64,000 nt of DNA from Selaginella moellendorffii (Eukaryota > Plantae > Lycopodiophyta), in the NCBI RefSeq assembly GCF_000143415.4, contig NW_003314261.1, forward strand, positions 2,491,266 through 2,555,265, in the 5' to 3' direction. The notes under the pieces were generated by a model that saw only the letters and a program-made list of their open reading frames with translations, had not been told where the DNA came from and did no database searches. Positions 13,857 to 48,743 of the stretch are shown piece after piece; position 1 is the first letter of the stretch; the number at the start of each line of letters is the position of its first letter. Position numbers and translations under genes: made by a program.

Positions 13857-13858
<2 letters not shown>

Positions 13859-13903
<45 letters not shown>

Positions 13904-13946
13904 ACACACACACACATATATATACCTCTGTGTGTGTGTGTGTGTG
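13859..13946. repeat. Compound microsatellite (TA)n-(CA)n-(TA)n-(TG)n
   Basis: Directly visible. Confidence 0.9.
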
Positions 13947-14309
13947 AGTGCTCATATAATAGTTATTTTATTAAATATGACTTGGATGTAAAGTATATAC
14001 CTATAATATCCAGCCATATTTTTAATTTAATGGTTGTAATTTTATACTCTTAAACTATCTGCAGGAAACTGTCCTTGTGGTTGTGGCCAGCCTTCTTTCC
14101 TGTGCGTCAGTTGGGGTATATTTTGTCACTCAGTTTAAATCCAAAAGTCCTAGGCTAAAGTCGCTATTTGTAAAGGTGAATGGTACTACGTTGAATAAGA
14201 GTGAAAACAACCTCTACAAATTTTCAACTGTTTTAATGTGAGCAAGAGTCAAGTTGACGAATCACCATGTACGAGAGCCTTGGCTGTGGGATGCACCCCA
14301 TCCGCCGGT

Positions 14310-16030
14310 CGGCCACATTTGACGCTGGATTGGGATGCCTGGTAGCCGGTTGCAAGAAGCTCCAAGTCGTCGTCCTCAACGGCTGTGTTGGTATTTTGGA
14401 TGCCGGGCTTTGCTTCCTTGCTTCCAACAGTAAAGAGCCCACCACCATCGACGCCTCATACACAGAGGTCTCTATCGAAAGGTCTCTCTTTGCTTTTCAT
14501 TTCTTTTTCCTGTGTTGTCATCTTTGGTTCATTTAGCATAGACCGTGGTTGATTTAACCAGAAACTTCTCTTTTTGGTCCTTGTGTCTTTCGAGTTTGGT
14601 TGACCTGATAAAAAAATCTGTTTTTGTTTTTGCTTACTGTTTCCCAGATCACTGATGACGGCATCATCAAACTTGCCGTCTCTCAGAGTGTTGAATCTGG
14701 CTGCGTGCTCCAACGTTGGAGACGCGGGATTCTCGTACAAGTACATCATTGCTGGTATGTACGATGACGATTCTAAAATACAGTCGTTCTAGTCTTCTTT
14801 TTGCTCAGGAACTGGATCTATCTTGACCAATGTGGGAATCTTGTTTCTCTTGAAGCGAAGCTTGTAGTTTCTAAAGCTCTCATCTGTAAATTCCTTGTGG
14901 AGTATCAATTAATTTGGTTCTTATACTCGTGAGAAAAACGATCGCAGATCACTGCCAGCTGTTGGAAGCAGTTGGAAAGCTCACGCAGATCCGAACATGG
15001 CTGGCTGCGAAATCGCCGGCGATGGGCTTCGCTTAGTGGGCTCTTTCTGTCTTCAGCTAAGCGACTAAGTTTGAGCAAGTGTAGAGACGGATTCTGGCAT
15101 GGCTTCCATTTTACATGGCTGCAAAAACCCCTGGAAGCTTGATCTTACTTGCTGCCTCCACCTCACGGAGATCACTGCTTGCAACATCGCAAGGTCGAGC
15201 GCGGGTCTTGTCAGCTTAAAGATCGAAGCTAGAACAACATTTCACTGTTGATAGATCGTTGTAGCTGCTTGGAAGAACTGGACGTGACCGATTGCAACAT
15301 CGATGACGCAGATATGAGAGTGTAGCTCAAAGCTGACAGTTGCAGGACTGGAATGTATTGCGAAATGTAGGTTTTTGAAGACTCTCAAGCTCGGGTTTTG
15401 CAAGGTCAGCGACAATGGCACCGAGCATGTTGGAAGAAATTGCTCCAACTTGATCAAGCTCGATTTATACAGGTCAGTTTTGTGGACTTTCCGAAGTGCC
15501 AGCATAAAAGTCTCACTTTTTTGTTTATCAACGTACAGGTCGGGGAATGTTGGTGATGCGGGAGTTGCGTCCATAGCCGCTGGCTGTCGCAAGTTGAGAA
15601 TTCTAATCCTCTCGTACTGTCCAAACATCACGGACGCTTCCATCGTCTTCAATTCGCAGCTCAGCTATCTCCAGCAGCTTTGCAAACGAGTTGGCCTGGA
15701 GAAAAAACTCCCGGAATTCAAGAACCTTGTAAAGCAAACACGATCTCAAACACTGCGGCATTGGCGATCGGGGAATGACCTCCATCGTCTACTGCTTTGC
15801 AAATCTCCAACAGGTTCAAGCTCTTCCAAATCTTTCTTCTCAAAAGCTTACGGTCGTTTTTCTTCTCTTACCAGCTAAATCTATCGTATTGCCGGATCTC
15901 CAACGCTGGACTCGTGATGCTGGGAAATCTTCGCTGCTTGCAAAACGTGAAGCTCGTCCAGATCGGGAATGTTTCCGTCGAAGTTCTCGCGGCATCACTC
16001 CTTTCGTGTGTTTACTTCAAGAAAGCATGC
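14310..16030 (+). pseudogene. F-box/LRR-repeat protein (FBL3-like) pseudogene retaining introns
   Basis: Cys-containing LRRs (DAGLGCLVAGCKKLQVVVLNGC, LKTLKLGFCKVSDNG, GDAGVASIAAGCRKLRILILSYCPNITD, LNLSYCRISNAGL) with frameshifts and stops; no F-box or start codon seen. Confidence 0.8.
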
Positions 16031-16169
16031 CATGGCCTGGAGAACAGTGGGCAATATGGATCAAGCCCAAAGAGCTTCGTGGAAAGCTTTCATGTCCGTT
16101 CAAAAACGCGCGAAAGATTCGTGAGAAAGTGGCCTTGGAGCCTGAATCCTCATGATCAAAGCTTACACC

Positions 16170-16380
16170 CGAGTTTTCCGTGAGATGCCCGGCCTTTCAC
16201 ATTGATGTTCTTGCCTGCGGTGTTTAGCACATCTAGTCACATTGGCTGCTTGGAGAAAAGCCACCTGTGTGTGCTTCACGTCGATTACCTTCGACCATGG
16301 ATTGATCTCAGTCGCTCAGGACAGTTTGGGAGAGCTCAAGATCTGATGAACAACATGCTGTTTCTCCCTCATGAGGCTCC
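16170..16380 (+). pseudogene. Degenerate PLS-class PPR gene fragment
   Basis: AVFSTSSHIGCLEK...IDLSRSGQFGRAQDLMNNMLFLP resembles the terminal PPR motifs (ACSH.G; IDLL.RSG.L..A.DL...MPF.P). Confidence 0.5.
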
Positions 16381-18173
16381 AGCCAGAAGCTCCGTCGCCA
16401 TATCCTTAGAGCAATCTTGTGCAAATTGCAGCATCATCTATTACTGAGCACTTCATATCATATGTGTTTGTTAGGTGACGCAGGAGAGGGCGGTGCTCGA
16501 TCGGCTGGATTGTTAAGGAAAGGAGTTAGTTTAGCGCGTAAACGATGGCAAGGACAATGACGCATCAAAGAAAATGCCAAGAACAAACAAAGAATGTGCA
16601 GGCAAGCGACAGACTTACATACGCAGCGGCCAAACAAATATTTCTTCTGCCTTGCAGCCGGACCGATCGACGAAGACTCCGTCAAATCCTGGCGAGATTT
16701 CCAGCGAGAAAACCCGATTCGCTACGAACCTGTGAAGCCAGAGAAGAGAATGCGGCCCGCCGGATGGAACGCCGCTCACCAATGATTCGTGATCGGAGAA
16801 AGAAATGGATGCCTGAATCATGAGCGGCCATAAATTTCCAAGCTTAATGTCCATTACGATCCGGCGCAGCTCTTACCTAACAGAGAGGAGAAAGCGAGCG
16901 AGAAATCGAGCCGATCGCTCGCAGCAACGCGATTCCGGGATTAGGGCTCCTCAAAAACCACTGACTATCCGAGTACTTTTGGACCAGCCCTCCTATATCT
17001 CAAACTTATTTTTAACGAAGAATATTATTTCACATTTGCATAGATAATTTTTTTGTAACAAACTCAAGTTTTAAATAAATCTGAATAGAAATATTTAACA
17101 ATTTCTATATAGTTTCTTAACATATGTTTTTCGTTTTACAAAAAGTTATAATCAATAACATCCATTATAGTATTTTGTAGTAATTGTTAATTTAAATACA
17201 TCCAGAAAAAAATTTGAAAAATTTAAATTAAATTTTTAGATTGGTTTAATGAATAATTTAATATTATTTTATTGAGTTGAGTATTCTACTTCTTTTAATT
17301 ACAATTGTAAAAGTCAATTATTGAGTTAAAAAAATATATTGGACTTCATATATGTAAATTGTATAAATATTTTCATAAAATCTAAACATATATTGTTAGC
17401 AAAGAAAATGAGCATGAAGATTTAGTGATAAAAGAGCTTTTACATTTACTTTAGCTTACTCGCTTAGCTAAACATGAGTATATTCCTTTTTTTAAAATAC
17501 ACGTTCAAGATATTTTTATTTAGTTGCATGGCTATTTTATTATTTTATTTTTTATTAGAAATTTTTTCCAACTTGAACAACATTTATCCAGACTGTTTTG
17601 CATATTTAATTATAGTTAAAAAATAAATGAAAAAACTGCTCTTCACAATTAAAAAAAAAGTCAACATATTTATTTATTGAGTTGGATGAGAATATCCACT
17701 ATGCATTAGTAAGTATTAACACTAAATGTAATTATATATTAATGCTATAACTAACCAAATATAAATAATAAGAGTAAATATAAATTCAATAAAAAAATTA
17801 ATTTTGATAAATTAAAATTCTCCTATCTCCTCTTTCTTTTTGCTTAGATTGTTGTTTCACAAAACTCAAGTCCACTAAAACGTTAGAAATGAAAGAAAAA
17901 TGAAAAACCAATGCACGACACAGTTCGTATTACAAGGTGGCCTCGGTCGGGTCGTTGTGGTTATAGGTGGCCTTTTGTCACAAGAAAACAAGCTTCTCAG
18001 AGCTTCAAGGAAGTGATATCCGGGCTTCAAAGTTCCACTGTATCATGATGGAGAAGAATTAAAAAAGCAAGAGGAGGAGACATAGACGATTAAAGGCTTC
18101 TCAAATAGCTCGGCTCTTCCTGAGTGTGTTTTAAAGGTTGAGAGGCTTCAGCATGGGGAAATGTGGCTCCTTG

Positions 18174-27545: not shown

Positions 27546-27720
27546 TGTGAGTGCTTGGAATATGGAAAGGGAATATAGAAATGTGCATATCAATTAGCCC
27601 AAAAGCCCTAGCTTATATATAGGAGCGAGTGGTCCAGATTGAAACTAATCCGACGGCTACCAAAATCCCATTACGCTAATATTAGTATATGGCATCATAG
27701 CCGTACACTTGGCCCTCACA
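27546..27720 (-). repeat. 3' LTR of A1 (175 bp)
   Basis: TGTGAG...CTCACA; 13 transition differences from the 5' LTR by manual count. Confidence 0.95.
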
Positions 27721-27836
27721 TCATTCCCCCCTCTCAGGATAATGGAAGACTATCAGGGTTCTCTTGTAGACGGGCCGGGATCTGGAGGAACATCAGGAGG
27801 AGGTATCGGCGGATCTGTAGATGGTATTAACTGCTC

Positions 27837-30800
27837 CTAATCCCTTTGTATGAAGCATTTCAACCGCTGCACATGCACAATCTCTAGAGGATCGGCCTGC
27901 TGGACGTCATGCCGAACCTCATAAACTTGTGGTCCAACTGGCCACAACACCCGATACGGTCCTTTCCACTGTGCAAGGAGCCCCTTAGATAAACCACGTA
28001 CCGTAAGATGGGGAAAACGGACTAACACCAAATCATCCACTTTGTACTCCGCAGGTGGACGATGACGGGAGTTGTAGTGCCGTTGTTGTCCCACTTGTAT
28101 GCGGCCTAAGTGTTTGGCAGACTCTGCTCGGACAAGTGGAAGAATGCTTGTCAAATATTGATCCCATGACTTAGCATCCGCAGCTCGTGGCAATCGCGAA
28201 GGTAAACCCAGCTCCGTTAGTAATATTGGATCATGACCATATAGGAGTTTATATGGTGAAGCACCAATAGAACTCTGCACCCCAGTGACATATGCATACC
28301 GAAGAGACGGCAAATAACCATCCCAATCCGAATGCTGAAAGTTCACATACTTCGCAATCATCCCCTTGAACGTCCGAACGAGCCGTTCCACCAGACCGTC
28401 TGATTGTGGATGATAAGCACTCATGAAAGTGTGGCGAATCCCCAACCGAGACGTCAAAACATGAAATGCCTCAGCCATAAAAGCGGGACCATTATCCGAA
28501 AGGATCCACTCTGGACAAGAATGCTGGAACACCACTCGATTGAAGAGGAAGTATCCAATAGTAGTTGTAGAGGCACTAGCAAGAGCACTAACTTCCACCC
28601 AACGAGTCAAATAGTCAGAAGCAATAATAACATACTCATTGCCAGCAGTTGACCGTGGAAAAGGTCCCATAAGATCAAACGCCACCAATTCAAACGGATG
28701 GGAAATTGCAATTGACTCCAATCGTCCTTCCGCAGTCCGAGGGGGAGTATTACGAGCTTGGCACCAAACGCAGCTACGCACATACCGGATAATATCACGT
28801 CACATCTCCGGCCAATAGAAAGACTTGCATAACTTCTCAATTACACGATGATGTCCCATATGCCCACCTAGAACAGGAGAATCATGGTAGGCATGGAGAA
28901 ACTGCGGAATAAAGATAGAAGGCACCACTAGCAGTAAATGATCATCAGGATCTGTCCCCACAAAATAAAGAAGGCCACCTTCAAGACGATATTGAGAATG
29001 TAAATGCCGGAAAGGCAAGTCATCAGCAAGTGATGCAGGATTCTTAAACCCATCTTGAAGCCTTCGAATCCATGGCTCAATCTTTTGAGCCTCGCGAACC
29101 TCATCAAGTGAAGGTAGATCTTCCTCTGCACCTTGTGGACACTGAACGTCAAGTATAGCAACCGCTGACGGCACAGAATCCTCATCTAGAAAATCCACAG
29201 ATGCTGGAATGACAGGCTCGTCAGAAACATGAGAAGAGAATGAAGAAGGAAGAGGAGCTCGAGAAAGGGCATCAGCATCAGCCATAAAACTCCCTGGGCA
29301 GTGAACAACATCAAAATCATATATCTGAAGCTTCAAAGCCCACCGAGCAGTACGACCAACCAGGTTCTTTCGCTTTAATAACGAAGTAACAGCAGCATGG
29401 TCACTTTCAAGTAACGTCCGAGAACCATGTAGATATGCATGAAGTTTCTCGAAACCCCAAACTGCTGCTAAACACTCCTTCTCTGTCGTGGAGTAGTTCA
29501 TCTCCGCTGGTTGTAATGTACGGCTTATATATGCAATGGGACGGTGCTGACCAGGCACACTCAAGCTCTCTTGCATTAACACACCTCCAAGACCAATGTC
29601 AGAAGCATCCACGCACAAAATAAAAGGTCGAGTGTAGTCAGGATATGCCAAAACCAGAGGAGTTGTCAATAACTTTTTGAGATCCCCAAACGCCCGATCA
29701 CAATCCGGAGACTAGATGAAAGATGATGTTGATGACTTCAGCAACGCTCGCAATGGTGCAGTGCGATCAGAAAGATGATCCACAAAACGCCCGAGATACT
29801 GCACCTTGCCCAAAAAACGCTGCACATCATTCACACACTTCGGAGTAGGGAACTTTAGAACAGCCACAAGTTTGTCAGGATCAACTTGCAAACCCTCACA
29901 AGAAATACGGTACCCAAGATAAGTTGTGTCCTTGGATCCAAACATGCACTTCGACTGCTTCAGCTTTAAACCAACGTCGTGTAGCCGATCCAACACTTTA
30001 CAAACATCATGAACGTGCTCCTCCTACATCCCCTCCGAGTGGATCAAGACATCATCAATGAAGTCAGCAGTCACCTCCGGCATATCGCAAAGAACCTCGT
30101 CCATCATCCGTTGAAAAGTTGCTGGAGCATTGTTCAAACCAAATGGCATCATTAAGAACTCATACAAACCAAATGGTGTACGAAAAGCAGTCTTAGGAAT
30201 ATCTTCTTCGGCCATCGGTACTTGCCAGTACCCAGAAGCAAGATCTAGCTTGGTGAACCAACAACTTCACCCCAGACGATCCAAGAGATCAGCAGTGTGA
30301 GGAAGAGGGTACACATCCGGGATCGTTACGTTGTTTAACGGACGATAGTCGATGCAGAAACGAATACTCCCATCAGGCTTCGTCACAAGATGAGGTTCAC
30401 ATGCCTAAGGACTTCGCGACTTCCGAATAACACCCTTCTCCAACATCTCCTGGACATTTGCACGTAAAATCTTGATCTCCTTTGGTGACCGATGACGAAC
30501 AAGAACCTTGATTGGACGAGCATCCCCAGTTGGAATTGGATGACGTGTAGCAATCTTGGCTCCAGACGATAGGTCAAAGTCAAAGAGATCAGAATACTCC
30601 TTCATGAGCCGGTCAACTGCTGCAACACAAAGATCGTCGGAGGGATCGGAAAAGGGAAGAGCAGAACATGATGGAAACACAGGAGGAAATAATGGGGGAA
30701 CAAAAGTAATGGAAGTAGAGGTAAAAGTAGAGGGACGAAGAGGTACAGATGTGAGAGGAATGGAGGAAATATAAGGAAGTATGAGACAAGGGGGAGAAGC

Positions 30801-31241
30801 CTCAAAGTCACACTTGGAATGAGTGCGCTGCAACCAATCCATACCAAGAATGAAGTCAAAAGCTTGACTTGGCACCACCCGCAACGACTGCAACTCAAGC
30901 TCGAGATCGCCCACATGCACAACCAGGTCTGCCTCATCCCGTGCACATGCATGTGTACGGCCGTTGCCATAAAGAATGAAAATTGGTTCCACCGCACGAC
31001 ACAAGTGTAGATGACAACGTGTGGCAATAGGTCGAGCAATAAAAGATAAACTCGAACCTGTATCAACCAACACTGAGAGAATAATATGAGACCTCTTGTT
31101 ATAAAGATGAGCTTGAAAAGTAAACACTGGATGAACTGGTGCCGAGTGAACCCCTTGATGATACTCCCGAAAGAAAGATGAAGGGGTCACTAACTTATTC
31201 ACGCAAGGTCCTTCCATTACCCGTGCGACTCCTCGTTTCCC
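27837..31241 (-). pseudogene. pol of A1 (protease, RT, RNase H, integrase), interrupted by stops
   Basis: ORF pieces 30405-31352, 30024-30215, 29712-29996, 28800-29669 and 27837-28781 lie in one frame, separated by nonsense codons. Confidence 0.93.
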
Positions 31242-32149
31242 GGATTCATCTCGGTGTCCAAACCTTCCACTGCAGCAGCACCAACGGGACATTGTTGATG
31301 CCAAGGTCTCCACCCAGGAAATGGAGGTCGCCAATCTAGAAAGCGCCGACAACGCCGATAAGTATGACCAACTTCATCACACGCCCAGCAACGAACATCA
31401 CGGCCACGACCACGTCCTCGTCCTTGTCCTTGGACTCGAGTAGCAGCAGCATCAACCTCCATGGGAACAGGACCATCACTCATAGAAAGTGGAGTGGAAG
31501 GACGTGCAGCAAGAAGTGGAAGAGGCGACGTCTCACAATGTTGTGCCAAGCGAAGAGCATCGTCAAGGGTGGCAGGAGCAAGTGCATGCATAAGGCCGAC
31601 AAGATCTTGACGAAGTGCTGGCTACAACATTCCTAGCTTGATCCGCTCCGACATATTGGGCTCCGCACGAAGCAAAAGACTTCGGAAACGAATGCCAAAT
31701 TGCATTACCGACTCAAATGACCCTTGGCGAAGACGATGCAATTGTTGGAAGGCATCGTCACAATCGTCGGCATGTCCGAAGGCGCGTTTGAAGACGTCCG
31801 GAAGATCACTCCAATCCTCACGAGTGGCCGCACTCAATCCATTGTACCACTGCAATGCCGTCCCTTGGAGACACGTGGGAAACTCATGTAAACGTCAATC
31901 ATCATCCCAAGAATGATATATGGCAATCACCGTGAAGTGATCGAACTAATGGTACACATCATCCCCGGGATTCCTACGAAAGAACTTTGGCCAAACGTGA
32001 GGATTGGCACCAAGAGCAGGAGGAGTTGGACCACGTGCCGTGAATGCCACCATCAATTGAGTTTGATTGTTCAATTGCAAGTGCATAGCATCAAGCAATT
32101 GGACCAACTGCTGCTCGAGAGTCAAAGGAGGAGATTGCTGATCTGCCAT
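31217..32149 (-). pseudogene. gag of A1
   Basis: MADQQSPP...; retrotransposon gag core (LQWYNGL...W..L...FKRAF); PVPMEVD; zinc knuckle CWACDEVGHTYRRC; internal stops. Confidence 0.9.
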
Positions 32150-32382
32150 GGAGACGAATGAAAAAGAAAGAGCAAAAGAAGAGAAATGACAAAAAGCTAG
32201 AAGGAAATGGTAGATCTAGACAATGCAAAAAGCTAGATCTAAACCAAAATCCTGAAAGGAAAGAACAAAAAGAAGGAAATGGAAAAAACTAGATCTAGAC
32301 AATGCAAAAGCTAGATCTAAACCAAAATCCTAAATCCAAGCACTTTTCAGGGACAATCAAAGGTGCCCCTCACCTCCACCAA

Positions 32383-32557
32383 TGTGAGTGCTTGGAATAT
32401 GGAAAGGGAATACAGAAATGTGCATATCAATTAACCCAAAAACCCTAGTTTATATACAGGAGTGAGTGGTCTAGATTGAAACTAATCCGACGGCTACCAA
32501 AATCCCACTACGCTAATATTAGTATACAGCATCGTAGTTGTACACTTGGCCCTCACA
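32383..32557 (-). repeat. 5' LTR of A1
   Basis: Direct repeat of 27546-27720, adjacent to the PBS TGGTGGAGGTGAGGGG. Confidence 0.95.
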
Positions 32558-32627
32558 AAACGAATTAAAATAAAAACAAAACAAATTAAAACACATCATG
32601 ATTACTTTGAGCAGTGTTTTAAGGTTC

Positions 32628-32801
32628 TGTGAGTGAATGGAATATGGAAAAGGAATATAGAAATGTGCATCTCAATTAGCCCAAAAACCCTAGCTTATAT
32701 ACAGGAGCAAGTGGTCCGGATTGAAACCAATCCGACGGCTACCAAAATCCACTACACTAATATTAGTATACGGCATCGTAGCCGTACACTTGGCCCTCAC
32801 A
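32628..32801 (-). repeat. 3' LTR of A2 (174 bp)
   Basis: TG..CA termini, PPT adjacent; shares diagnostic variants with the split 5' LTR. Confidence 0.95.
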
Positions 32802-32833
32802 TCATCCCCTCCTCTCGGAATAATGGAAGGCAG

Positions 32834-35460
32834 TCAGGGTTCTCTTGTAGATGGGCCGGGATCTAGTGGAACGTCAGGAGGAGGCATCGGGGGATCTGTA
32901 GACGGTATTAACTGCTCCTGATCCCTTTGTATGAAGCGTTTTAACCGCTGCACATGCACAATCTCCGGAGGATCGGCCTGCTGAACGTCATGCCGAACCT
33001 CATAAACTTGTGGTCCAACTTGCCGCAAGACCCGATACGGTCCTTTCCACTGCGCAAGGAGCCCCTTAGATAAACCACATACCGTAAGATGGGGAAAACG
33101 GACTAACACCAAATCATCCACTTTGTACTCCGCAGGTGGACGATGATGGGAATTGTAGCGCCGTTGTTGTCCCACTTGTACACGGCCTAAGTGTTCAGCA
33201 GACTCTACTCGGACAAGTGGAAGAATGCTTGTCAAATATTGATCCCATGACCTAGCATCAGGAGCTCGTGGCAATCGCGAAGGTAAACCCAGCTCTGTTG
33301 GTAATATTGGATCATGACCATATAGAAGTTTATATGGTGAAGCACCAACAGAACTCTGCACCTCTGTGATATAGGCATACCGAAGAGACGGCAAATAACC
33401 ATCCCAATCTGAATGTTGAAAGTTCACATACTTCGCAATCATCCCTTTGAATGTCCGAACGAGCCGTTCCACCAGATCGTCTGATTGTGGATGATAAGCA
33501 CTCGTAAAAGTGTGGCGTATCCCCAACCGAGATGTCAAAACATGAAATACCTCAGCCATAAATGCAGGACCATTATCTGAAAGAATCCGCTCTGGACAAG
33601 AATGCTGGAACACCACTCGATTGAGGAGGAAGTATCCAACAGCAGTGGCAGAGGCACTAGCAAGAGCACCAACTTCCACCCAACGAGTCAAGTAGTCAGA
33701 AGCAATAATAACATATTCATTGCCAGCAGTCGATCGTGGAAAAGGTCCCATAAGATCAAACGCCACCAACTCAAACGGACGAGAAACTGCAATTGACTCC
33801 AACCGTCCTTCTGCAGCACAAGGGGGAGTATTACGAGCTTGGCACCAAACGCAACTACGCACATACCAGATAATATCACGTCGCATCTCTGGCCAATAGA
33901 AAGATCTGCGCAGCTTCTTGGTGACACGACGGTGCCCCATATGCCCACCTAGAATAGGAGAATCATGGTAGGCATGGAGAAACCGCGGAATAAACACCGA
34001 AGGTACCACCAGCCGTAAATGATCAGCAGGATCCGTCCCCACAAAATAAAGAAGGCCATCTTCAAGGCGATATTGAGAATGTAAATGCCGAAAAGGCAAG
34101 TCATCAGCAAGTGATGCAGGATTCTCAAACCCATCTCGAAGCCTTCGAATCCACGGCTCAATCTTTTGAGCCTTGCGAACCTCATCAAGTGAAGGTAGAT
34201 CTTGCTCTACGCCCTGTGGACACTAAACGTCAAGGATAGCAACCGCCGACGGCACAGCATCCTCATCTAGAAAATCCACAGATGCTGGAACAACAGGTTC
34301 GTCAGAAACATGAGAAGTGAGTGGAGAAGGAAGAGGAGCTCGAGAAAGGGCATCAGCATCAGCCATAGAACTCCCTGGGCGATGAACAACATCGAAATCA
34401 TATATCTGAAGCTTCAAAGCCCATCGAGTCATACGACCAACCAGGTTCTTCCGCTTCAATAATAAAGTAACAGCAACATGGTCACCTTCAAGTAACGTCC
34501 GAGAACCATGTAGATATGCATGAAGTTTCTCGAAACCCCAGACTGCTGCTAAACACTCCTTCTCCGTCGTGGAGTAGTTCATCTCCACTGGTTGCAATGT
34601 ACGGCTTATGTATGCAATGGGATGGCGCTGACCAGGCACACTCGAGCTCTCTTGCATCAACACACCTCCAAGACCAATGTCAGAAGCATCCACGCACAAA
34701 ATAAAAGGTCGAGTGTAGTCAGGATATGCCAAAACCGGAGGAGTCGTCAATAGCTCTTTGAGATTCACGAACGCTTGCTCACAATCCGGAGACCAGATGA
34801 AAGATGACGTGGATGGCTTCAGCAACGCTCGCAATGGTGTAGTGCGATCGGAAAGATGATCCACAAAACGACCAAGATACTACACCTTACCCAAAAAACG
34901 CTGCACATCATTCACACACTTCGGAGTAGGGAACTTTAGAACAGCCACAAGTTTGTCAGGATCAACTTGCAAACCCTCACGAGAAATACGGTACCCAAGA
35001 TAAGTTGTGTCCTTGGACCCAAACACGCACTTCAATCGCTTCAGCTTTAAACCAACGTCGCGTAGCCGATCCAACACTTTACAAACATCACGAACATGCT
35101 CCTCCCATGTCCCCTCCGAGTGGATCAAGACATCATCAATGAAGTCAGCCGTCACCTCCGGCATATCGCAAAGAACCTCGTCCATCATCCGCTGAAAAGT
35201 TGCTGGAGCACTGTTCAAACCAAACGGTATCACCAAAAACTCGTACAAACCAAATGGTGTACGAAAAGCAGTATTAGGAATATCTTCTTCGGCCATCAGT
35301 ACTTGCCAATACCCAGAAGCAAGATCTAGCTTGGTGAACCAACGACTTCGCCCCAGACGATCCAAGAGATCAGCAGTGTGAGGAAGCGGGTACACGTCCG
35401 GGATCGTCACTTCATTTAACGGACGATAGTCAATGCAGAAACGAATACTCCCATCAGGCT
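32834..35460 (-). pseudogene. RT-RNase H-integrase part of A2 pol
   Basis: ORFs 34880-35410, 34223-34864 and 32834-34099, separated by TAG stops. Confidence 0.93.
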
Positions 35461-35754
35461 TGTCTCAACCAAAAACAAGGTTCAGGGGACTCCGACTTTG
35501 AACCCAAGGCTGCATCGGAGCCATAGATTAAATCATGCACAGCATATGGTATATGCTAGCAATTAGAACCGCTAGCATTTCAAAAGGGGGAATCCAAATT
35601 GTGGATCCCTATCTCCATTCCATTGTTTCTCTTATCAATACACAGCATTCTTTTACTCGTGCTTCTTCTCTGCCCTTGGAGATCGGGCCCTTTTCTCTTT
35701 TGTTTTCTTACTAACAATAGATTTCCAGTGAAGAGGAGTTTTCTCACCTCTTCA
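35461..35754 (+). repeat. 5' LTR of element B
   Basis: TGTCTC...CTTCA followed by the PBS. Confidence 0.95.
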
Positions 35755-35934
35755 TTTGGCGACCACGGCTTCTGAATTCCCCTTCAGGTTCACAAATTCT
35801 TCCATTTTTTCTCCATTCTCTGTGCGCAGATAGCAAGAACGATCCAGAAATCTACCCATCTCGCCCAAATTCGCCCAAATTACGCCCTAATTCGTACATT
35901 CGCCCAAATTCAACACGCAAATGCCACTGCCACC

Positions 35935-38900
35935 ATGGATCAACGGCGTCCAAGCGGTTGCTGCCCAATGCAGTAAAGACAGAAACTTTCCAGAGGAGAT
36001 CTTTGAAGAATCTGCAAGCTCTCTCTCGAGATCTGCAAGTCCAATCACCGACGGAGAACACCAATGACTCTCTTTGACAAGAAACTCCAATCTACCAGCA
36101 CCTTCATCAGCAAACGCCCTCAGCAGCTTCATTGGCAAACTCCATCTCCGAGCACAAGACCACCCACTCCAAGTTCGAGACATCAACCAGCGCCCTCGAC
36201 ACAAACCGACACCACTACCGAAACGAACCCATCTTCTGTGCAGTCGTCGACCCAGCAATCCTAGCGTTCCGACACAAGTCCAATTCCTGCGCCCACTCCA
36301 AATACCAAAGCACATCCTCAAAACCTACACCAACGACGAACCCATCACTTTGTTACCCGGTATCGGACAACTTGTCGAGGGACAACTTCACAACGCACCG
36401 TTCTCGGAGAGAGCACCAAGTCAAAACTTCGGAAACTCAGGAAAACAATCGACAAGCTCAAGGGAAAAGCCAAGACCGACATCAAAGAATTTCGATCTGG
36501 AATTTGGTGTACTAAGTGCAAGAACGAAGGACATCCGGCAAGTGACTGCAAGCTCCAAATCTCCAAATGCCAGATCTGTACCAAAGAAGGTCATGACGCC
36601 AAGACTTGCAGATTTCAAAATTCTCCAGAAGTTCGACAAGTCTCGAACTATCCCCGACAGCAGTTTCGACAACCATATCCAAATCAATACTTGGACAATT
36701 ACCAGCCACCACCTCTGACAAACTGGAGACCACCGAGAAACAACTTCCAACACCAGAGTCGACAATGGAATGATCAACCTCACTACAACAACTACAACAA
36801 TTACAACAACGACTACAACAACAACTACAACGATCGACAATACCTGCCGAACTGGAACTACCCGGCAAACTGAGACAACTACAACCAAGGATACCAACAA
36901 TACCCAAGATACCAAAACCGAAGATACCAAGGCCAAGGTTATCAAGACCAGGCCTACCAAGGCAACTACAACAACCGACTATGGCAACCTCAACTTCAAA
37001 ACCAAGGCGGTCTGCCGAGACTTGGTCCACCGCCTCCTCGACAACAAGATCAGAACCAGCAGCAACCACCAACAACAAGGATGGTCGAGACCGACGAAAT
37101 ACCTTATGCCGACAATGACGACTCAGATCCTCAAGTCATGGCAGTACAAACCCGAGCACAAATTCGAGCAAAAAAACAACAACAACCGGACAGAGATTTC
37201 GGAGATAGTGAAGAGAAAGGCCCTGAGAGCCCGACAAAACTCCGGGAATGGAAAAAGAAGCAGAAGTTAGCTGCCAAGATACAGCAGCAACTCGCTCTAC
37301 AACCACCCGAATTAGTGATTTTAGACTCCGACAATGAAGCTCAACCATCACCAGCTCGACAACAATGCCAAGACTCAATACCAGAAAACAGACAGACACA
37401 TCGTCCAACATCGACACCGACACCAGAACACAATTCGGCAAATTTCGACAAAATCCAAGCAGTCGCAGAGACTATCCTCAACCAAAATATTCAGATCACC
37501 ATCGGCCAACTGCTGAAGATTGCACCCTACCTCACCAAACAGCTCACCGATCTGACATCTGCACCGACCAACACTTTGATAGACTCGCCCACACTCAACT
37601 CGACATAGACAGCTGTTGACACATTTCGAACCGAGATTCAACCAGGTGATTGTGACAATGATGTTCTGACAATCGACCTACAACTCGACAAACATCTTGT
37701 TCGAGGAGCCATAATTGACGGCGGCTCCAGCGTTAATATTATTGAAGAAAGTCTTGTTCAACAACTCAACATCGGCCCAGTTCACCCAGCACCTTTCAAT
37801 GTCCGAATGGCCGACCACCGATCTGTTCAACCCAAAGGCATCATCCAAAAAGTCAACACCACCATTCAAGGCGTCGAAATACCAGTCAACTATGTCGTCC
37901 TCAAACTACCGGAGCAGACCGACGGATACTCAATTCTCCTCGGTCGACCTTGGCTCCGAACTGCCCAAGTTTATCAAGATTGGCCCAATGACAATCTTAT
38001 CCTTCACGGACCAGACGGACCAACAACTGTGTCGACAAAAGCGACTAAATTGCTGTCCAGCCACAACCGACCTATTGACTTGGAAGAATATAATCTCGAA
38101 GATGGCCTCGACGACTATCAAGAACAACAAATTCTCACAGCCTACCCCGATCTCGAACCTTTGGCCGAGATCGACCTCTTCCGAATTGTCGCCGACTTCC
38201 AACGAGAACGACCCCCAATTACATCAGCACTGAAAAATCCAGTCACTTGAGATAAAAACTCGAAGCACCACCAGCATTCACAGTCGACAACCACAACAAA
38301 GTTGCCTACATTCCGTCAATTCCAGCAGACCAAAAACTCGAAAAAGTCAGCCTTGCCGACGATGGCAACAAACACTACATTGTACTCGCCACTGACATCT
38401 CGGCAAGTTTTCGAGACAAAGGCATCAATCTTCTCCGAAAGAAGAAACACTTGTTCGCTTGGAGTTATCGAGACCTTAAGGGAGTTTCGCCAAAACTTAG
38501 CCTTCACACCATCACCCTTCTTCCAGACTCAAAACCAAGAAGACAAGCAGCCTACCGAATGAATCCGAATCTGATGGAACAAGTAAAGAAAGAACTCGAC
38601 AAGCTTCTCCAAGTCGAGTACATCTACCCAATTCAGAATCCGATATGGCTTTCACCACTGGTGGTTGTACTGAAGAAAAATGGCAAACTTCGAATCTACG
38701 TCAACTATAAACAGCTCAACGACGCCACCGAAAAAGATGTCTTCCCGATACCATTTACCGACGAAGTTCTTGACGCAGTCGCCGGACACGAGATGTATTC
38801 CTTCCTCGATGGTTTCTCCGGCTACAACCAAATTCACATCGCCGAAGAAGATCAGCACAAGACAGCATTCATTAGTCCATGGGGAGCCTATGCTTATCGA

Positions 38901-39302
38901 CGAATGCCTTTTGGACTCTGCAACGCCCCATTTACCTTCCAAAGGCTTGTTACCAACACTTTCCGAGACTACCTCACTGACTTCATGAGAGTCTTCATGG
39001 ACGACTTCAGCGTTTTCAGCTCGGAAGATCAACATCTTGAATGCCTGGAGAAATGCCTCAACAAGTGTGAGGAGAACAACATAGCACTCAACCCCGACAA
39101 ATGCGCTTTCTTCGTCAAATCTGGAGTACTCCTCGGCCACGTTGTCTGCAAAGATGGCATTCTCATCGACAAGGACAAAGTTGACGTCATCTCAAAACTT
39201 GAACCGCCGAAGAACCAGAAAGAACTTCGGCGCTTCCTCGGCAAAGTCAGATATCACTGACGATTCATCCACAAGTACGCTCACATTGCCAAACCACTCA
39301 CC
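35935..39302 (+). pseudogene. gag-PR-RT of element B with frameshifts and stops
   Basis: WCTKCKNEGHPASDC and CQICTKEGHDAKTC knuckles; Asn/Tyr/Gln-rich tract; protease; RT ORF 38451-39260. Confidence 0.88.
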
Positions 39303-39429
39303 TAGTGGATTTTGGTAGCCGTCGGATTGGTTTCAATCCGGACCACTCGCTCCTGTATATAAGCTAGGGTTTTTGGGCTAATTGAGATGCACATTTCTGT
39401 ATTCCTTTTCCATATTCCATGCACTCACA
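39303..39429 (+). repeat. Inverted major part of the A2 5' LTR
   Basis: Reverse complement of the first 127 nt of the LTR as read on plus; followed by the PBS TGGTGGAGATGAGGGG (39431-39446). Confidence 0.93.
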
Positions 39430-39662
39430 TTGGTGGAGATGAGGGGCACCTTTGATTGTCCCTGGGGAGTGCTTGGATTTGGGATTTCGATTTAGATCTA
39501 GCTTTTGCATTGTCTAGATCTAGCTTTTTCCATTTCCTTTCTTTTGTTCTTTCCTTTTAGGATTTTGGTTTAGATCTAGCTTTTTGCATTGTCTAGATTT
39601 ACCATTTCTTTCCAGCTTTTTGTCATTTCTCTTCTTTTGCTCTTTCTTTTTCATTCATCTTC

Positions 39663-41436
39663 ATGGCCGATCCGCAATCTCCTCCTTTGACTCTAGAGTA
39701 GCAATTGGTTCAATTGCTTGATGCTATGCGCTTGCAATTGAATAATCAAACTCAGTTGATGGCGGCATTCACGGCACATGGTACAACTCCTCCTGCTTTT
39801 GGTGCCAATCCTCGCGTTCGGCCGGAGTTCTTTCGTGGGAATCCTGGGGATGATGTGTACCATTGGTTCGATCACTTCACGGTGATTGCCACATATCATT
39901 CTTGGGATGATGCTCGCCGTTTGCGCGAGTTCCCCACATGTCTCCAAGGGACGGCATTGCAGTGGTACAATGGATTGAGCGCAGCTACTCGTGGCGATTG
40001 GATTGTTCTTCCGGACGTCTTCAAACGCGCTTTTGGACACGCCGACGATTGTGATGATGCCTTCCAACAATTGCATCGTCTTCGCCAAGGGCCATCTGAG
40101 TCAGTGATGCAATTTGGCATTCGTTTCCGAAGTCTTTTGCTTCGTGCGGAGCCCAATATGTCGGAGCGGATCAAGCTAGGAATGTTGTAGCCAGCACTTC
40201 GTCAAGATCTTGTCGGCCTTATGCATGCACTTGCTCCTGCCACCCTTGACGATGCTCTTCGCTTGGCACAATGTTATGAGATGTCGCCTCTTCCACTTCT
40301 TGCTACACGTCCTTCAGCTCTACTTCCTATGAGTGATGCTCCTGTTCCCATGGAGGTTGATGCTGCTGCTACTCGAGTCCAAGGACAAGGGCGAGGACGT
40401 GGTCGTGGCCGTGACGTCCGTTGCTGGGCGTGTGATGAAGTTGGTCATACTTATCGGCGTTGTCGGCGCTTTCCGGATTAGCGACCTCCATTTCCTGGGT
40501 GGAGACCTTGGCGTCAGCAACGTCCCATTGGTGCTGCTGCGGTGGAAGGTTTGGATCCCGAGGTGCATTCGGGAAACGAGGAGTCGCGCGAGTAATGGAG
40601 GGACCTTGCACGAATAAGTTAGTGACCCCTCCATCTTTCTTTCGGGAGTATCATCAAGGGGTTCACTCGGCACCGGTTCATCCAGTGTTTACTTTCCAAG
40701 CTCGTTTTTATAACAAAAGGTCTCCTATTCTTCTCTCCGTGTTGGTTGATACAGGTTCGAGTTTATCTTCTATTGCTCGACCTGTTGCCACACGTTGTCG
40801 TCTACACTTACGTCGTGCGGCAGATCCAGTTTTCATTCTTTACGGCAACGGCCGTACACATGCATGTGCACGAGATGAGGCAGACCTGGTTGTGCATGTG
40901 GGCGATCTCGACTTGAGTTGCAGTCGTTGCGGGTGGTGCCGAGTCAAGCTTTTGACCTCATTCTTGGTATGGATTGGTTGCAGCACAATCATGCCAAGTG
41001 TGACTTTGAGGCTTCTCCCCCTTGTCTCATACTTCCTTATGTTTCATCCATTCCTCTCACTTCTGTACCTCTTCGTCCCTCTACTTTTACCTCTGCTTCC
41101 ATTACTTTTGTTCCCCCACTATTTCCTCTTGTGTTTCCATCTTGTTTTGCTCTTCCCTTTTCCGATCCCTCCGATGATCTTTGTGTTGCAGCTGTTGACC
41201 AGCTCATAAAGGAGTATTCTGATCTCTTTGAATTTGACCTATCATCTGGGGCCAAGATTGCCACATGTCATCCCATTCCAACCGGGGATGCTCGTCCAAT
41301 CAAGGTTCCTGTTCGTCGTCGGTCACCCAAGGAGATCAAGATTTTACGTGCAAACGTCAAGGAGATGTTGGAGAAGGGTGTTATTCGGAAGTCGCGGAGT
41401 CCTTGGGCATGTGAACCTCATCTTGTGACGAAGCCT
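39663..41436 (+). pseudogene. gag and protease of A2 (inside the inverted segment)
   Basis: Highly similar to A1 gag/PR; ends ...CEPHLVTKP exactly where the A2 RT resumes at 35460. Confidence 0.92.
40571..40634 (+). promoter_or_regulatory. -1 programmed ribosomal frameshift signal (G GGA AAC plus H-type pseudoknot) at the gag/pol junction; second copy at 31178-31241 on minus
   Basis: Heptamer 40571-40577 in gag phase; 6-nt spacer; stem 1 TCGCGCGAG/CTTGCACGA; stem 2 ATGGAGGG/CCCTCCAT. pol is in the -1 frame. Confidence 0.8.
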
Positions 41437-41730
41437 TGAAGAGGTGAGAAAACTCCTCTTCACTGGAAATCTATTGTTAGTAAGAAAACAAAAGAGAAAA
41501 GGGCCCGATCTCCAAGGGCAGAGAAGAAGCACGAGTAAAAGAATGTTGTGTATTAATAAGAGAAACAATGGAATGGAGATAGGGATCCACAATTTGGATT
41601 CCCCCTTTTGAAATGCTAGCGGTTCTAACTGCTAGCATATACCATATGTTGTGCATGATTTAATCTATGGCTCTGATGCAGCCCTGGGTTCAAAGTCGGA
41701 GTCCCCTGAACCTTGTTTTTGGTTGAGACA
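41437..41730 (-). repeat. 3' LTR of element B (inverted)
   Basis: Reverse complement of 35461-35754 with about 6 transitions; PPT AGGGGAGCAGAG adjacent. Confidence 0.95.
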
Positions 41731-41749
41731 CTCTGCTCCCCTGACAGAA

Positions 41750-43747
41750 CTAGACACCGTCCTCGGTGCGAACATAGTCAGTTTCCATCGCTTGTTGCTG
41801 CTGCTGCTCCAGTCGATAGAGGCGACGTTTTTGTTGTGGGAGTGTAAGCTCGTGGTTAGGGACGCTGTCTGGTGGATCTGTCCCATCTTCCTGGAGGTCG
41901 GCTACCTCAGCCAGCAGGGCGGTATGATCATCCTCGAGTTTTCGGTAGCGGGTGTTGAGCTCTTCGTATTTGAATTTGTAGGTGAATTCGTGAGCTGCTG
42001 ATGGGGTTGATGGCTGCTTGGAGACGATCTTCCTGATGTCCCGGAGGTCAGTGCGGATCTGCTTCATCTCTTCAATCTGAGTATCCAGCCGGTGGTTTAA
42101 AGGCTCATAAAATTCCTTCTTGATCGCTCCCCAGGTGTATATGAAGGAGTCTTGCTTGAGAAGATGCTGTGCAATGTCGGCTGGTGTTGGGAAGTAGTTT
42201 GCTTGCTCGCGGTGCATGCGTTGATCCAAGGCTTCAAACAACTTGCGGGTGCAGTAGCTTGGGTCGCGAAGTTTATCTTCGTACTCCTTCCTGATCTCAT
42301 CATAATCACGGCGTACCTGACTCTGTGGTTGAGGCATGGTTGCTGCTCCTGCTCCTGCTCGGTGATCCTGGTGTTTCTCGCTAGGGTTCGCTCTGTTCTT
42401 GGTCCCGGGAGTTGAAGTTACTGGAGGCTGAATCTGCTTCGTTGGATGTGGGTGACGTGGTTGGGCCAGATTCTTTGAGGTGGTTGGAGATGAGCTTTTC
42501 AGTTTGATGGTGGATGAACGGCCCAGATGTGGCGTTGAAATTAATTTATCCGTTGAGAAATTTTTCGCTTGGAATTTTGTTGAAGGGGCGGAATTTTTGT
42601 GAATGCTGGTCGTGGTATTTGCTGGAAGAGACATGGTTGCGTGTTCTTCAAGTGATTGGCGAAGGTAGTCAATGTTTTCTTTTGTAGAACGTGTCAAGGA
42701 GGTCGGGGCGTTGAGAATGTTGTTCTCAGCTGGTGTAGAAATTGAGTTCTGGGCGATCAGCTGACGTTTTTCTTTGGCAATGTTGATGTGTTTGTGAGAA
42801 GTTGTCGGTTTTGGGGCTGATTCGAGTGGATGCGGGTTCTGGGGTGATTGTTGATGGTGGTGTGAGTTGTGTTCCTTGTCGCTGATGATGAGGTGCTCTC
42901 GGATCAGCGGTTTGGGAGCTGGATTCGCTGGTGTTTTGCGTGTGAAGCGGCGGCGAAGTGGAGTTGAATTGTTGGAGTGTTTGTTGCTGGAGCTGGTGTT
43001 GTTGGAGTGAGTTGAGCTTGATTGTTGAGATGCTGGCTTCTGTTTCTTGTTGGGAGTTGCTCCTTCTGATTTTGAGTGTTCTTCGGAGCTGTCGCTTTGT
43101 TCTGTGGAGTTCGTTTGGGTTGTCCACGGTTGCTTGTTGGGAAGAGCTTGGTGTAGAGCGATCAGCAGTGGGAAGATTACTGTGCGCATGGTCTTCTTGT
43201 TGAGTGTGGCGAGGATGGCGCGGTCGAGAAGCTTGAGAAGGAGCTCGTGGAGATGGTGAGCCACGTTCACACGTTTGCCGTCGAGTAGAGCTCCGTAGAC
43301 TTCTGCTGTGCACTTGCCGATGGTGCGATCTGTTGGGTGAAGTTCGTAGTAGAGGAGGAGGGCTTTGAGTCGATCCATATGTTGCTCGTCGATGTCCTCC
43401 CATGTGAGCTCACCGGTAATTTCTCGATTGGCTTTGATGATTTGCTGTGGAACTTCTCCTGAAAATTTGAGCATTCCCTTGTTGGAGATTTTGAAAACAG
43501 AGGCGATTCTTGCTGGGCTGAGGGTGATCTCGTTGGTGCCGTCGGTTATGGTGCTGTTCTTGGGGTTGAAGGAGGCAGCCAGTTTCCTCGCTAGTTTTTT
43601 ATCAGGGTGTGTTGAAAAGGCCTTGTGGAGGAGCTCAAATCCGTGGTCCTTGAGCCAGGTGGTTGTGTCGTTGCTGGGAAGCCTAGGAATATGGTGTATG
43701 ACGTATCTGAGGCATCGGGGTGGATGAGCTGGCATCTTTCTCTTCAT
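41750..43747 (-). CDS. Intact additional ORF (665 aa) of element B between integrase and the 3' LTR
   Basis: Uninterrupted ATG-initiated ORF, co-oriented with B pol and ending at the PPT. Globular N-terminus, S/T/N-rich linker, C-terminal coiled coil. Confidence 0.8.
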   Translation of the reverse strand: MKRKMPAHPPRCLRYVIHHIPRLPSNDTTTWLKDHGFELLHKAFSTHPDKKLARKLAASFNPKNSTITDGTNEITLSPARIASVFKISNKGMLKFSGEVPQQIIKANREITGELTWEDIDEQHMDRLKALLLYYELHPTDRTIGKCTAEVYGALLDGKRVNVAHHLHELLLKLLDRAILATLNKKTMRTVIFPLLIALHQALPNKQPWTTQTNSTEQSDSSEEHSKSEGATPNKKQKPASQQSSSTHSNNTSSSNKHSNNSTPLRRRFTRKTPANPAPKPLIREHLIISDKEHNSHHHQQSPQNPHPLESAPKPTTSHKHINIAKEKRQLIAQNSISTPAENNILNAPTSLTRSTKENIDYLRQSLEEHATMSLPANTTTSIHKNSAPSTKFQAKNFSTDKLISTPHLGRSSTIKLKSSSPTTSKNLAQPRHPHPTKQIQPPVTSTPGTKNRANPSEKHQDHRAGAGAATMPQPQSQVRRDYDEIRKEYEDKLRDPSYCTRKLFEALDQRMHREQANYFPTPADIAQHLLKQDSFIYTWGAIKKEFYEPLNHRLDTQIEEMKQIRTDLRDIRKIVSKQPSTPSAAHEFTYKFKYEELNTRYRKLEDDHTALLAEVADLQEDGTDPPDSVPNHELTLPQQKRRLYRLEQQQQQAMETDYVRTEDGV

Positions 43748-44064
43748 TTTCTGCGATCGAAGTGCTCGCCCCGTTAGGGTTCTTGAAACCTATAACTGTT
43801 GGTTGGCTGATCGTGCGGCACTCGATTGCTGGTGATGAACGGTCGAGATTTGTTGACGGAATTGATGTGGTTTGATTTGGCTTGATTGCAAATCAATGGT
43901 GGATATTGGTGATGAAGTTAACTCAAGTTCAACTGTTGATATTTGCTCAGGTGGCGTTGATCCAACGGTAGCTTGGGACTTACAAATTTTTGCTGCTGTT
44001 TGTTGCTGAAGTTGGTGGATGAGTTCGTGTTGAGTTGAGTTGAGTTGTATCGAACTGATTTGAG

Positions 44065-45973
44065 TTAAAGTTTGTCTATTGGGGTGAGTGTTGATTGTTG
44101 GTTTTGGGGTGTTTGTCGGTTTGGGTCTGAAATTTGTTGAGGTGCTGATGTTGAATATGTTGACGTGATATGGTCAAAGCTTGTTGAGGTTGACGATCTC
44201 AGTGAAGTCTTCGGCGAGTGTGCTGACTTTGGCGGTGCCGTTGGGGTATAGTTCAATGATTTTGAAAGGTCCTTGCCAGTTGGTGTGGAGTTTTCGGCCA
44301 AGTTTGCCGATGGGTCCTCGGTACCAGAGAACATGGTCGTCGACGCTGTATTTGGGAATGTTATGCTGGGATGCTTGTCGGTCGTGCCGAGCTTTTCTCT
44401 GTTTTTGGATGGCGTGAAGTGTCCAAAGGGCATTTAGTCGGAGTTCGTCGAGATGTTCGAGTTGCTGAAGCCTTTCTCGAACTGCATGTCGGGTATCAAG
44501 ATTATACTTGACGGTGACTCGCATGCTTGGGACGATGAATTCAATTGGTGTGATGGCTTCTGTTCCAAAGGCGAGTTTGAATGGCGTCATGTCAGTGGTG
44601 ACTTTATACGCAGTGCGATAGGCCCAAAGTACGTCGAGAAGTTTGTCGTCCCAGTCTTTGCCGGAATCGTTGATGACTTTTTTGAGGATGGTCTTCAGTG
44701 TTTTGTTCGTTGCTTCTGCTTGACCGTTGCCTTGAGGATAGTATGGTGTTGACGTTTTATGTCGGAGTTTGAACTCGGTGGCGAGATGTTCGATTGTTTG
44801 GTTGATGAAGTGGGTGCCTCTATCGGTGACGAGTTCAAGTGGTGTGCCGAAACGAGTGATGATATTTTCGTAGATGAAGGTTGCTGTTGCTTTTGCTGTG
44901 GCATGTTGGAGAGGTATTGCTTCGGCCCACTTGGTAGTGTAATCGGTGGCAACGATGATGTACTGATTTCATCGACGGGTGCTGACTTGGGGTCCGACGA
45001 AGTCGAGTCCCCATTTCTGAAATGGTGCCATTGGGAATGTTGGGTTGAGTTGTTGAGTCTGAGTTTTCGGTGGTAATCGGTATCTTTGACATGTGTCGCA
45101 GCATTTGCAGAATTCTTCAGTGTCGTGCCAGAGTGTCGGCCACCAGAGGCCGGCTTGAAGAATCTTCCGAGTGGTTGTGTCAGCAGCGAAGTGTCCGCCG
45201 GAAGGTCCATCATGAGCTTCCTTGATGATTTGAGTTGTGTGTGGCTGCTTGATGCATCGGCAAAGAATGTTGTCAATTCCGAGTTTGTAGAGAGTGCCTC
45301 CAATGATTGAGTATCGTCGGGTTTTAGCAACAAAAGTCTTCTTTTGGTCGGACGTAGTGTACTGATCTGGAACTTTTGCTGAGTTGAGGTAACTGAAGAC
45401 GTCATCGAGCTAGGTTGCTGGTATTGAAACTCGGAATAGGTTTGAGTCGGGTAAGTCGTCGGTAAGTATTTCGGGTTTGTCGCCGGTGGTGATCCGGCTG
45501 AGATAATCTGCTTGTTCATGATTTTTGCCGGGTTTGTGGACAATCTCGAAGTTGTATTCTTGTAGTAAAAGGAACCATCTTGATATTCGACCAGATAGTA
45601 TTGGCTTGTTGATGAGGTAAAGGATTCCCTTGTGGTCGACGAAAATTACGACTTTAATTGACAGTATGTAGTGTCGAAACTTCTGAAGTGAGTAGATCAT
45701 GCCGAGAGCTTCTTTCTCGGTGGTGGTGTAATTTCGTTCAGCTGAGTTGAGTAGTCGGCTGGCGTAGTAGATCGGTTGATCTCAGTTGTCGTGTTGAGTT
45801 TGGCTCAGAATTGCACCAGTGGCGACGTCGGAAGTGTCGACATGAATGTGGAACTCTTGGGTCCAATCGGGCTTGGCAAGGATCGGTGCTGTTGTTAGTT
45901 TGAGTCGGAGATTATCGAATGCTTGTTGCTGTTCGGACGTCCATGTCCATTGGGCATTTTGTTTTAGTCCATC
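44065..45973 (-). pseudogene. RNase H and integrase of element B
   Basis: WTWTSEQQQAF..APILAKPDW..FHIHVDTSDVATG; YTTTEKEALGMIYSLQKFRHY; PFQKWGLDFVGP; TPFKLAFGTEAITPIEF; WQGPF. Contains stops. Confidence 0.9.
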
Positions 45974-46020
45974 CGCTAATATTAGTATACGGCATCGTAG
46001 CCGTACACTTGGCCCTCACA
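45974..46020 (-). repeat. Terminal 47 bp of the A2 5' LTR left outside the inversion
   Basis: CGCTAATATTAG...GGCCCTCACA followed by the TSD GTTC. Confidence 0.93.
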
Positions 46021-46277
46021 GTTCTAAAATATTCACTCGCATCTTAATGGGCCATAAATCGCCAACCCACATGGCATAAATTATTCTTCTTTATATCATG
46101 TTGTAATTCAAATAAAAAATTTTAAGGATAACTTTTAAGCAAAATCAAACAAGATAAACTGCCCTCCACTTGGAGGCAAATGCAAAGATATCCACTCATG
46201 AACTTCCGTTGATCCATGAAACGAACAATTTCCTTCCAAAGTAGATTGGTCAAAGAAGATTCCAAACCGTTTAAAAG

Positions 46278-47180
46278 CACTCCCGGCTTGATCGCCTCGA
46301 TCTCACCCTTCAGTTTCTAGCTCGAGTACTTTGGATTTGCTCGCACGGCATCGCCATTTTGAGGCGCTTGTGGCCAGATCAAGAATCTGCTGCTCTCGGC
46401 GGATCCACGCAACCGGCGTTGCATGCACAGCACAAATCAGGGGCTCTACTTCCCACCCTTCACAATTGGAAAGGTATTCTTATTCCTCTTCTTATTCTTA
46501 ATCTTCTTAATTTTGCTCAGCTCGCACAGTTTTCCTGTTGTAAGGTTCTCCCGGTATCGAGAGTGATTTCTTCAGACAATGTGGACTACAAAGCTGGGGA
46601 TATCGTGACGTGCTTGGTGAATACTCGCTCGCTGTTGCGAGGCGGGAAAGATGGATTTTGTCCACTCAAGAGGATGGATGCGTTCCATTGGAAAATTATC
46701 TCTCCTTTCTGGTTATAGAATGCATTGACAATGTCACGAGAACTATGATACACGATCCAGGCATCCCCGGATTCACTGCTTGGATTAATCATCCCCTAAT
46801 TGGGATTCGAGCGTGGCTATTGAGATGGTTGAGGGTGGCTTCCAGCATCTTGCCACCAACATTGTCGAAGTAGACGTCAGTCAACAGCCTAGAACTATAT
46901 AGAAGCACTCAAGAAACTTGAGAATGGACAAGAAGATGTTCGGTTACCTTAGCATTCCAGTCCTTTCTTGTAATTGAACGAGAAAGTCAAAATCTGAGAG
47001 AGACAGACAAACACACAGAGACAGAAACGTAGCACTGAAAGTCTGGACAGTGAAACCTCGCCTTCTCGTCAGTGCCTACAACCTCAACAGCCTCGTGTTT
47101 TCGCAATTAGACACAGTGAAACCTTACCTTCTCGTCAGTGCCTTCGTGTTTTCGCAATTAGACCCGCGGCAAGCCCTGGA
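46278..47180. pseudogene. Scrambled, partly inverted duplicate of the neighbouring alkenal reductase gene
   Basis: About 46278-46360 matches 48630-48750 in the same orientation. About 46385-46786 matches 48145-48610 in the opposite orientation, including introns. About 46787-46990 matches 47685-47900 in the same orientation. Many indels. Confidence 0.8.

Positions 47181-47360: not shown

Positions 47361-48743
<1,383 letters not shown>

Follow-up and report, generated by a model that had tools for sequence, protein, structure and literature searches.

How did a segment of several kilobases come to lie reversed inside a pair of nested retrotransposons, with neither of its ends at the boundary of an element and with every base accounted for? 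The question is raised by positions 39303-45973 (6671 bp) of a 64,000-nucleotide stretch of the Selaginella moellendorffii genome (contig NW_003314261.1, positions 2,491,266 to 2,555,265 of the forward strand), which is referred to below as the window. The segment is inverted relative to both flanks, and it cuts through two Ty3/gypsy elements, here named A and B. It is probably a real chromosomal micro-inversion, produced after the insertion of B by two blunt double-strand breaks that were joined by classical non-homologous end joining (c-NHEJ).

The nested elements and the inverted segment

Self-comparison of the window, together with Pfam scans, identifies element A as a Ty3/gypsy retrotransposon on the minus strand. 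It encodes gag, protease, reverse transcriptase (RT), RNase H and integrase domains, and is bounded by long terminal repeats (LTRs) of 174-175 nt with TG..CA ends and by a 4-bp target-site duplication (TSD). The element is present as a full-length copy, A1, and an interrupted copy, A2. A second Ty3/gypsy element, B, is inserted in the pol of A2 in the orientation opposite to A. In A and B alike, the LTRs have TG..CA ends, the TSDs measure 4-5 bp, and the pol order is protease, RT, RNase H, integrase, as in Ty3/gypsy elements (for B, Pfam did not pick up the protease). Among named sequences, those nearest to the B RT come from the liverworts Riccia and Marchantia and from the fern Adiantum, and are 50-57% identical to it. 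In-frame stops mark A and B as degenerate, and the integrase region of B also has a broken reading frame. A2 was compared with A1 as its uninverted counterpart, and A1 also shows the insertion site of B in its empty state. The parts of the nest, in order of position, are the following.

27546..32557, minus strand: A1, full-length Ty3/gypsy element; 175-nt LTRs at 27546-27720 and 32383-32557; TSD AAAC
32624..32627, no strand: left copy of the A2 TSD, GTTC
32628..35460, minus strand: 3' part of A2 in the original orientation; 3' LTR at 32628-32801, then integrase, RNase H and RT
35456-35460 (left copy) and 41432-41436 (right copy, reverse strand): B TSD, AGGCT; the A1 empty site shows it to be a 5-bp duplication
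35461..39302, plus strand: 5' part of B in the original orientation; 5' LTR at 35461-35754 (TG..CA), low-complexity gag-like region, RT at 38451-39302
39303..41436, plus strand: 5' part of A2, inverted; inner 127 nt of the 5' LTR at 39303-39429, gag at 39705-40190, protease at 40460-41403
41437..45973, minus strand: 3' part of B, inverted; 3' LTR at 41437-41730, 665-aa open reading frame (ORF) at 41750-43747, degenerate integrase at ~44177-45316, RNase H at 45422-45973
45974..46020, minus strand: outer 47 nt of the A2 5' LTR in the original orientation, followed by the right copy of the TSD GTTC at 46021-46024

A2 is colinear with A1 up to position 35460, where B breaks in. The remaining parts of both elements are found by self-comparison as three reversed matches: A1 30375-32510 with 41436-39303 (2136 nt, 92.8% identity), the B LTR 35461-35754 with 41730-41437 (294 nt, 98%), and the left LTR of A2, 32628-32754, with 39429-39303 (127 nt, 97.6%). 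When the segment is reversed, the two 294-nt LTRs of B become direct repeats bounded by AGGCT, and B pol assumes the order RT, RNase H, integrase, extra ORF, LTR. The same operation rejoins the two pieces of the A2 5' LTR (127 + 47 = 174 nt), which then align to the 174-nt left LTR without a gap and with 4 differences, and it leaves A2 flanked by GTTC (32624-32627 and 46021-46024).

The initial annotation of this stretch had claimed that flipping 39303-45973 restores everything, with a continuous B pol, a rejoined A2 5' LTR, direct B LTRs flanked by AGGCT, and A2 flanked by GTTC. Each of these points was recovered, down to the location of both TSDs, with A1 as the empty site. A real inversion is favoured because one flip restores four independent structures (the B LTRs with AGGCT, the B domain order, the A2 LTR and GTTC). 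Chance would be no reasonable explanation for a single flip that restores two LTR pairs, two TSDs, one reading frame and one domain order. Nested retrotransposons can serve here as a ruler, as their LTRs, TSDs and reading frames allow reconstruction at the level of single bases without an outgroup.

The base composition of B follows the same geometry. The sense strand of the element is strongly enriched in A and C at the expense of G and T at 36000-38000 (plus strand) and 42000-46000 (minus strand), with a GC skew of about -0.28 and an AT skew of about +0.33, and the sign of this skew reverses in exact register with the inversion. The 665-aa ORF of B, on the minus strand at 41750-43747 between the integrase and the 3' LTR, is intact and begins with ATG, in contrast to the broken rest of B pol. 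Its product is of low complexity and rich in charged residues; it matched no Pfam family, and neither a word search nor a scan of viral contigs found a relative. The two A copies are 92.5% identical, lie in the same orientation 70 bp apart, and each have their own 4-bp TSD (AAAC and GTTC), and this closeness suggests repeated insertion into one small target region.

The two junctions

The inverted segment meets its flanks at two points.

39302..39303: junction 1, where the RT/RNase H linker of B adjoins the interior of the A2 5' LTR; microhomology 0
45973..45974: junction 2, where the reversed start of the B RNase H adjoins the outer 47 nt of the A2 5' LTR; microhomology 0

Neither breakpoint can be slid by even one base, hence the value of 0 for microhomology. 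No filler, duplication or loss is seen at either junction, and the two reciprocal junctions jointly account for every ancestral base. Between the two junction regions, compared over ±300 bp, no similarity was found (all matches had E values of at least 1). Both breakpoints are situated away from the element termini, one in the linker between RT and RNase H of B and the other 47 nt inside the A2 LTR, and no new TSD flanks the inverted segment. These observations bear out the earlier description of the junctions as blunt, free of deletion, duplication, filler and perfect microhomology, and placed off the element ends, together with its conclusion that neither LTR recombination nor ordinary transposition explains them.

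For the break in A2 the original continuity can be read from the other LTRs. The reverse complement of 39303-39429, ending in CCACTA, and the sequence beginning with CGCTAA at 45974 occupy adjacent columns when aligned to the three other A LTRs, as had been proposed for this LTR. For the break in B the comparison was made with relatives and solved structures as the reference, in place of a second B copy, and loss of sequence was tested with the two pol pieces kept apart. The 5' part of B ends with codons for HIAKPLT (39282-39302), and the RNase H piece (45422-45973, minus strand, with one in-frame stop) begins with DGLKQNAQWTW on the reverse strand from 45973; the two are in frame, in agreement with the continuity first noted for them. 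From PLT to the conserved W there are 11 residues in B and likewise in the relatives P0063, P0039, P0038 and P0035, with the residues matching position by position in the alignment. A scan of metagenomes with the 21 bases to the left of junction 1 gave a single match, to an unrelated gypsy element (L001) that carries HIAKPLT codons, and there too 11 residues separate PLT from W. Measured from the end of the RT piece to the start of the RNase H piece, the spacing in B is 15 residues (one in-frame stop, at 39258-39260, and 14 others), and the matching spacing is 15 in three solved RT structures (8wus, 4mh8 and 8r0s). In the Ty3 structure it is 13 instead of the expected 15, a value taken from a weak alignment (E = 0.14).

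A short palindrome spans each junction: CCACT..AGTGG with a 5-nt spacer over junction 1 (39294-39308), and TTAG..CTAA with an 8-nt spacer over junction 2 (45964-45979). Their source lies in the ancestral arrangement, in which each of the two sites carried CCACT on the left side of the break and CTAA on its right side. Such a context was obtained in ~2% of simulated random inversions in the window (p ~0.02, for a test chosen post hoc).

Origin of the inversion

The inversion is later than the insertion of B, because it splits B. The earlier steps can be ordered by nesting and by LTR divergence: the LTRs of A1 are ~92.6% identical (about 7% diverged), those of A2 differ at 4 of 174 positions (Kimura two-parameter distance, K2P, 0.023), and those of B by 6 transitions in 294 nt (K2P 0.021). 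The order would be A1 first and A2 next, followed by B inside A2 and finally by the inversion. Following this order, A2 would have landed 70 bp away from A1, the older of the two, and B in the pol of A2. Two double-strand breaks 6.67 kb apart, one in the RT/RNase H linker of B and one 47 nt inside the A2 5' LTR, would then have released a segment that classical (Ku/Lig4-type) end joining put back in the opposite orientation, without resection, fill-in or filler. At a plant substitution rate of ~1e-8 per site per year, which may not hold for this lineage, the inversion would be younger than roughly one million years.

The features expected of end joining are found at this locus, namely reciprocal, base-complete junctions and the absence of extended homology or microhomology at the breakpoints. 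The c-NHEJ pathway is the one that handles unresected blunt ends (PMC7156093). The sequence directly shows the anatomy of the nest, the conservative junctions, the lack of homology and the timing after the insertion of B; bluntness of the ends, c-NHEJ as the joiner and an event in the organism rather than in the data are inferred. End joining is favoured because loss-free junctions have a precedent in plants: in Arabidopsis cut at two places by a nuclease, no sequence was lost at 10 of 14 inversion junctions, and both junctions were of this kind in 3 of 7 independent events (PMC7474074). In those heritable inversions, obtained with two Cas9 breaks (Schmidt et al. 2020, PMC7474074), the segment was religated in reverse as proposed here, and most junctions, sometimes both of an event, were free of loss and of microhomology. 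They differ from the present case in that a known blunt-cutting nuclease was at work there, while the segment here is 6.7 kb long and lies wholly within transposon sequence. The Cas9-induced inversion reportedly measured 1.17 Mb. The inversions induced in Arabidopsis by radiation are likewise two-break, end-joined products, with a share of junctions free of insertions or deletions (6 of 26 rearrangement junctions after gamma irradiation); most of the junctions there show small deletions, microhomology or insertions, whereas both are clean here (PMC8775353). The mechanism is most likely an ordinary one with nothing new in kind, and the locus a new instance of the known conservative two-break inversion. 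A fully conservative event of this type in a non-seed-plant-like genome is a data point on the fidelity of repair rather than a new mechanism.

Several considerations weigh against two-break end joining. Spontaneous, 'dirty' breaks leave four ends without one lost base only in a minority of cases: the gamma-ray data give ~23% per junction, hence a few per cent for both, while a computational flip guarantees the result. An agent able to make two clean breaks would have to be supposed. The exactness of the B break at the level of single bases would follow from frame and spacing only. A flip made during data handling would look the same as a real inversion in the assembled sequence.

Three candidates had been put forward in the initial annotation, and they fared differently: a clean two-break end-joining event is the one favoured here, an unknown site-specific activity is argued against by the lack of a common core, and an artefact of assembly or processing keeps a real chance. 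Such an artefact, in which arbitrary cuts were made and the piece between them was turned round in assembly editing, scaffolding, curation or processing, is unlikely but has to be taken seriously, given that a computational cut-and-flip always leaves loss-free junctions and biological repair does so only sometimes (PMC8775353). A chimeric read, on the other hand, yields one junction and not an exactly reciprocal pair, and neither an inverted repeat nor a repeat edge common to both lies at the breakpoints to lead an assembler astray. The uninverted order has no inverted repeats on the two sides of the segment, which would leave an assembler without homology for a flip. Joins made by scaffolders or contig-breaking tools are normally marked with N, and the window contains no N anywhere, hence no gap mark, which weakens the case for a flip in silico. 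Breakage at staggered cuts with subsequent fill-in or trimming is excluded, as nothing was duplicated or lost.

The conservative character of the event, with CCACT and CTAA on the two sides of the break at both ancestral sites, could also be put down to an enzyme that cut the two sites and resealed them crosswise (a recombinase, a subunit exchange of topoisomerase II, or a transposon-encoded nuclease). This is improbable. Recombinases of the tyrosine and serine types depend on a crossover core that is identical in the two sites, and here the sites have 0 bases in common; the distances from motif to break are also unequal, 4 and 6 nt at one site as against 1 and 2 nt at the other. A 4-nt staggered exchange by topoisomerase II would be expected to cost one site 4 bp and to give the other a 4-bp inverted duplication, neither of which is seen, and there is no recombinase among the scanned ORFs, while the figure of ~2% for the motif is a post hoc one. 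That the locus instead bears the footprint of an unrecognised activity, capable of paired blunt cuts and of conservative, homology-free resealing, is quite improbable, the sole hint of it being the weak CCACT...CTAA context. Replication-based template switching, of the type described as fork stalling and template switching or microhomology-mediated break-induced replication, does yield small inversions inside repeats. It requires a priming microhomology, which is 0 here, and usually leaves duplications, deletions or templated insertions, whereas nothing was gained or lost at this locus; we regard it as very improbable. Repeat-rich segments are also inverted by non-allelic homologous recombination, including that between LTRs, and A and B, both of them Ty3/gypsy elements in opposite orientations, do provide inverted pol homology nearby. 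That route requires inverted homologous repeats at both breakpoints. None exist here: the breakpoints fall at non-homologous positions (a pol linker and the interior of an LTR), and the junction regions lack similarity. The inverted repeats now present are the result of the inversion and not its cause. An integrase or transposase reaction (autointegration or alternative transposition) is opposed by the lack of a breakpoint at any element terminus and of a new TSD around the segment. Recombination between inverted repeats (LTR with LTR, or A pol with B pol) and these reactions are, taken together, hardly credible. With these routes set aside, crosswise ligation of two blunt or otherwise clean double-strand breaks by classical end joining is left as the mechanism for a real event.

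Consequences and neighbouring features

The inversion disrupts no host gene, as it lies wholly within transposon sequence. It does leave new inverted repeats: the gag-protease region of A (30375-32510 in A1 and 39303-41436; arms of 2.1 kb, 6.8 kb apart), the LTRs of B (arms of 294 nt, 5.7 kb apart), and the 127-nt fragment of the A2 LTR. They could give rise to hairpin RNA against both element families, and could also act as substrates for further flips. Mu killer of maize, a transposon duplicated in inverted orientation, brings about the silencing of its own family. As in that system, a rearrangement has here set part of a transposon in inverted orientation beside a related copy, with arms of 2.1 kb for A and 294 nt for the B LTRs; the present case differs in being known from sequence only, and in having its arms 5.7-6.8 kb apart.

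Plant nuclear genes flank the nest within the window, and encode DUF630/DUF632, protein kinase, Tim17, KH, SufE-domain and OPT products. For the SufE-domain gene the best matches of a word search reach 46-55% identity, and the nearest named ones, from Ginkgo and Taxus, 46-47%; with the liverwort and fern matches of the B RT, this would suggest a land-plant lineage scarcely covered by the searched collections and probably outside the seed plants. To the right of the nest, a pair of 112-nt inverted repeats (46377-46488 and 48510-48621) is found with 90% identity and a separation of 2 kb, and weaker inverted similarity is seen further in, between 46548-46794 and 48130-48407. This repeat pair may belong to a terminal-inverted-repeat element or to a foldback element. 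Two stretches of the window, whose GC content is otherwise ~50%, are AT-rich: 16001-18000 (GC 0.36) and 12001-14000 (GC 0.27), the latter with an (AT)22 run at 13859-13902.

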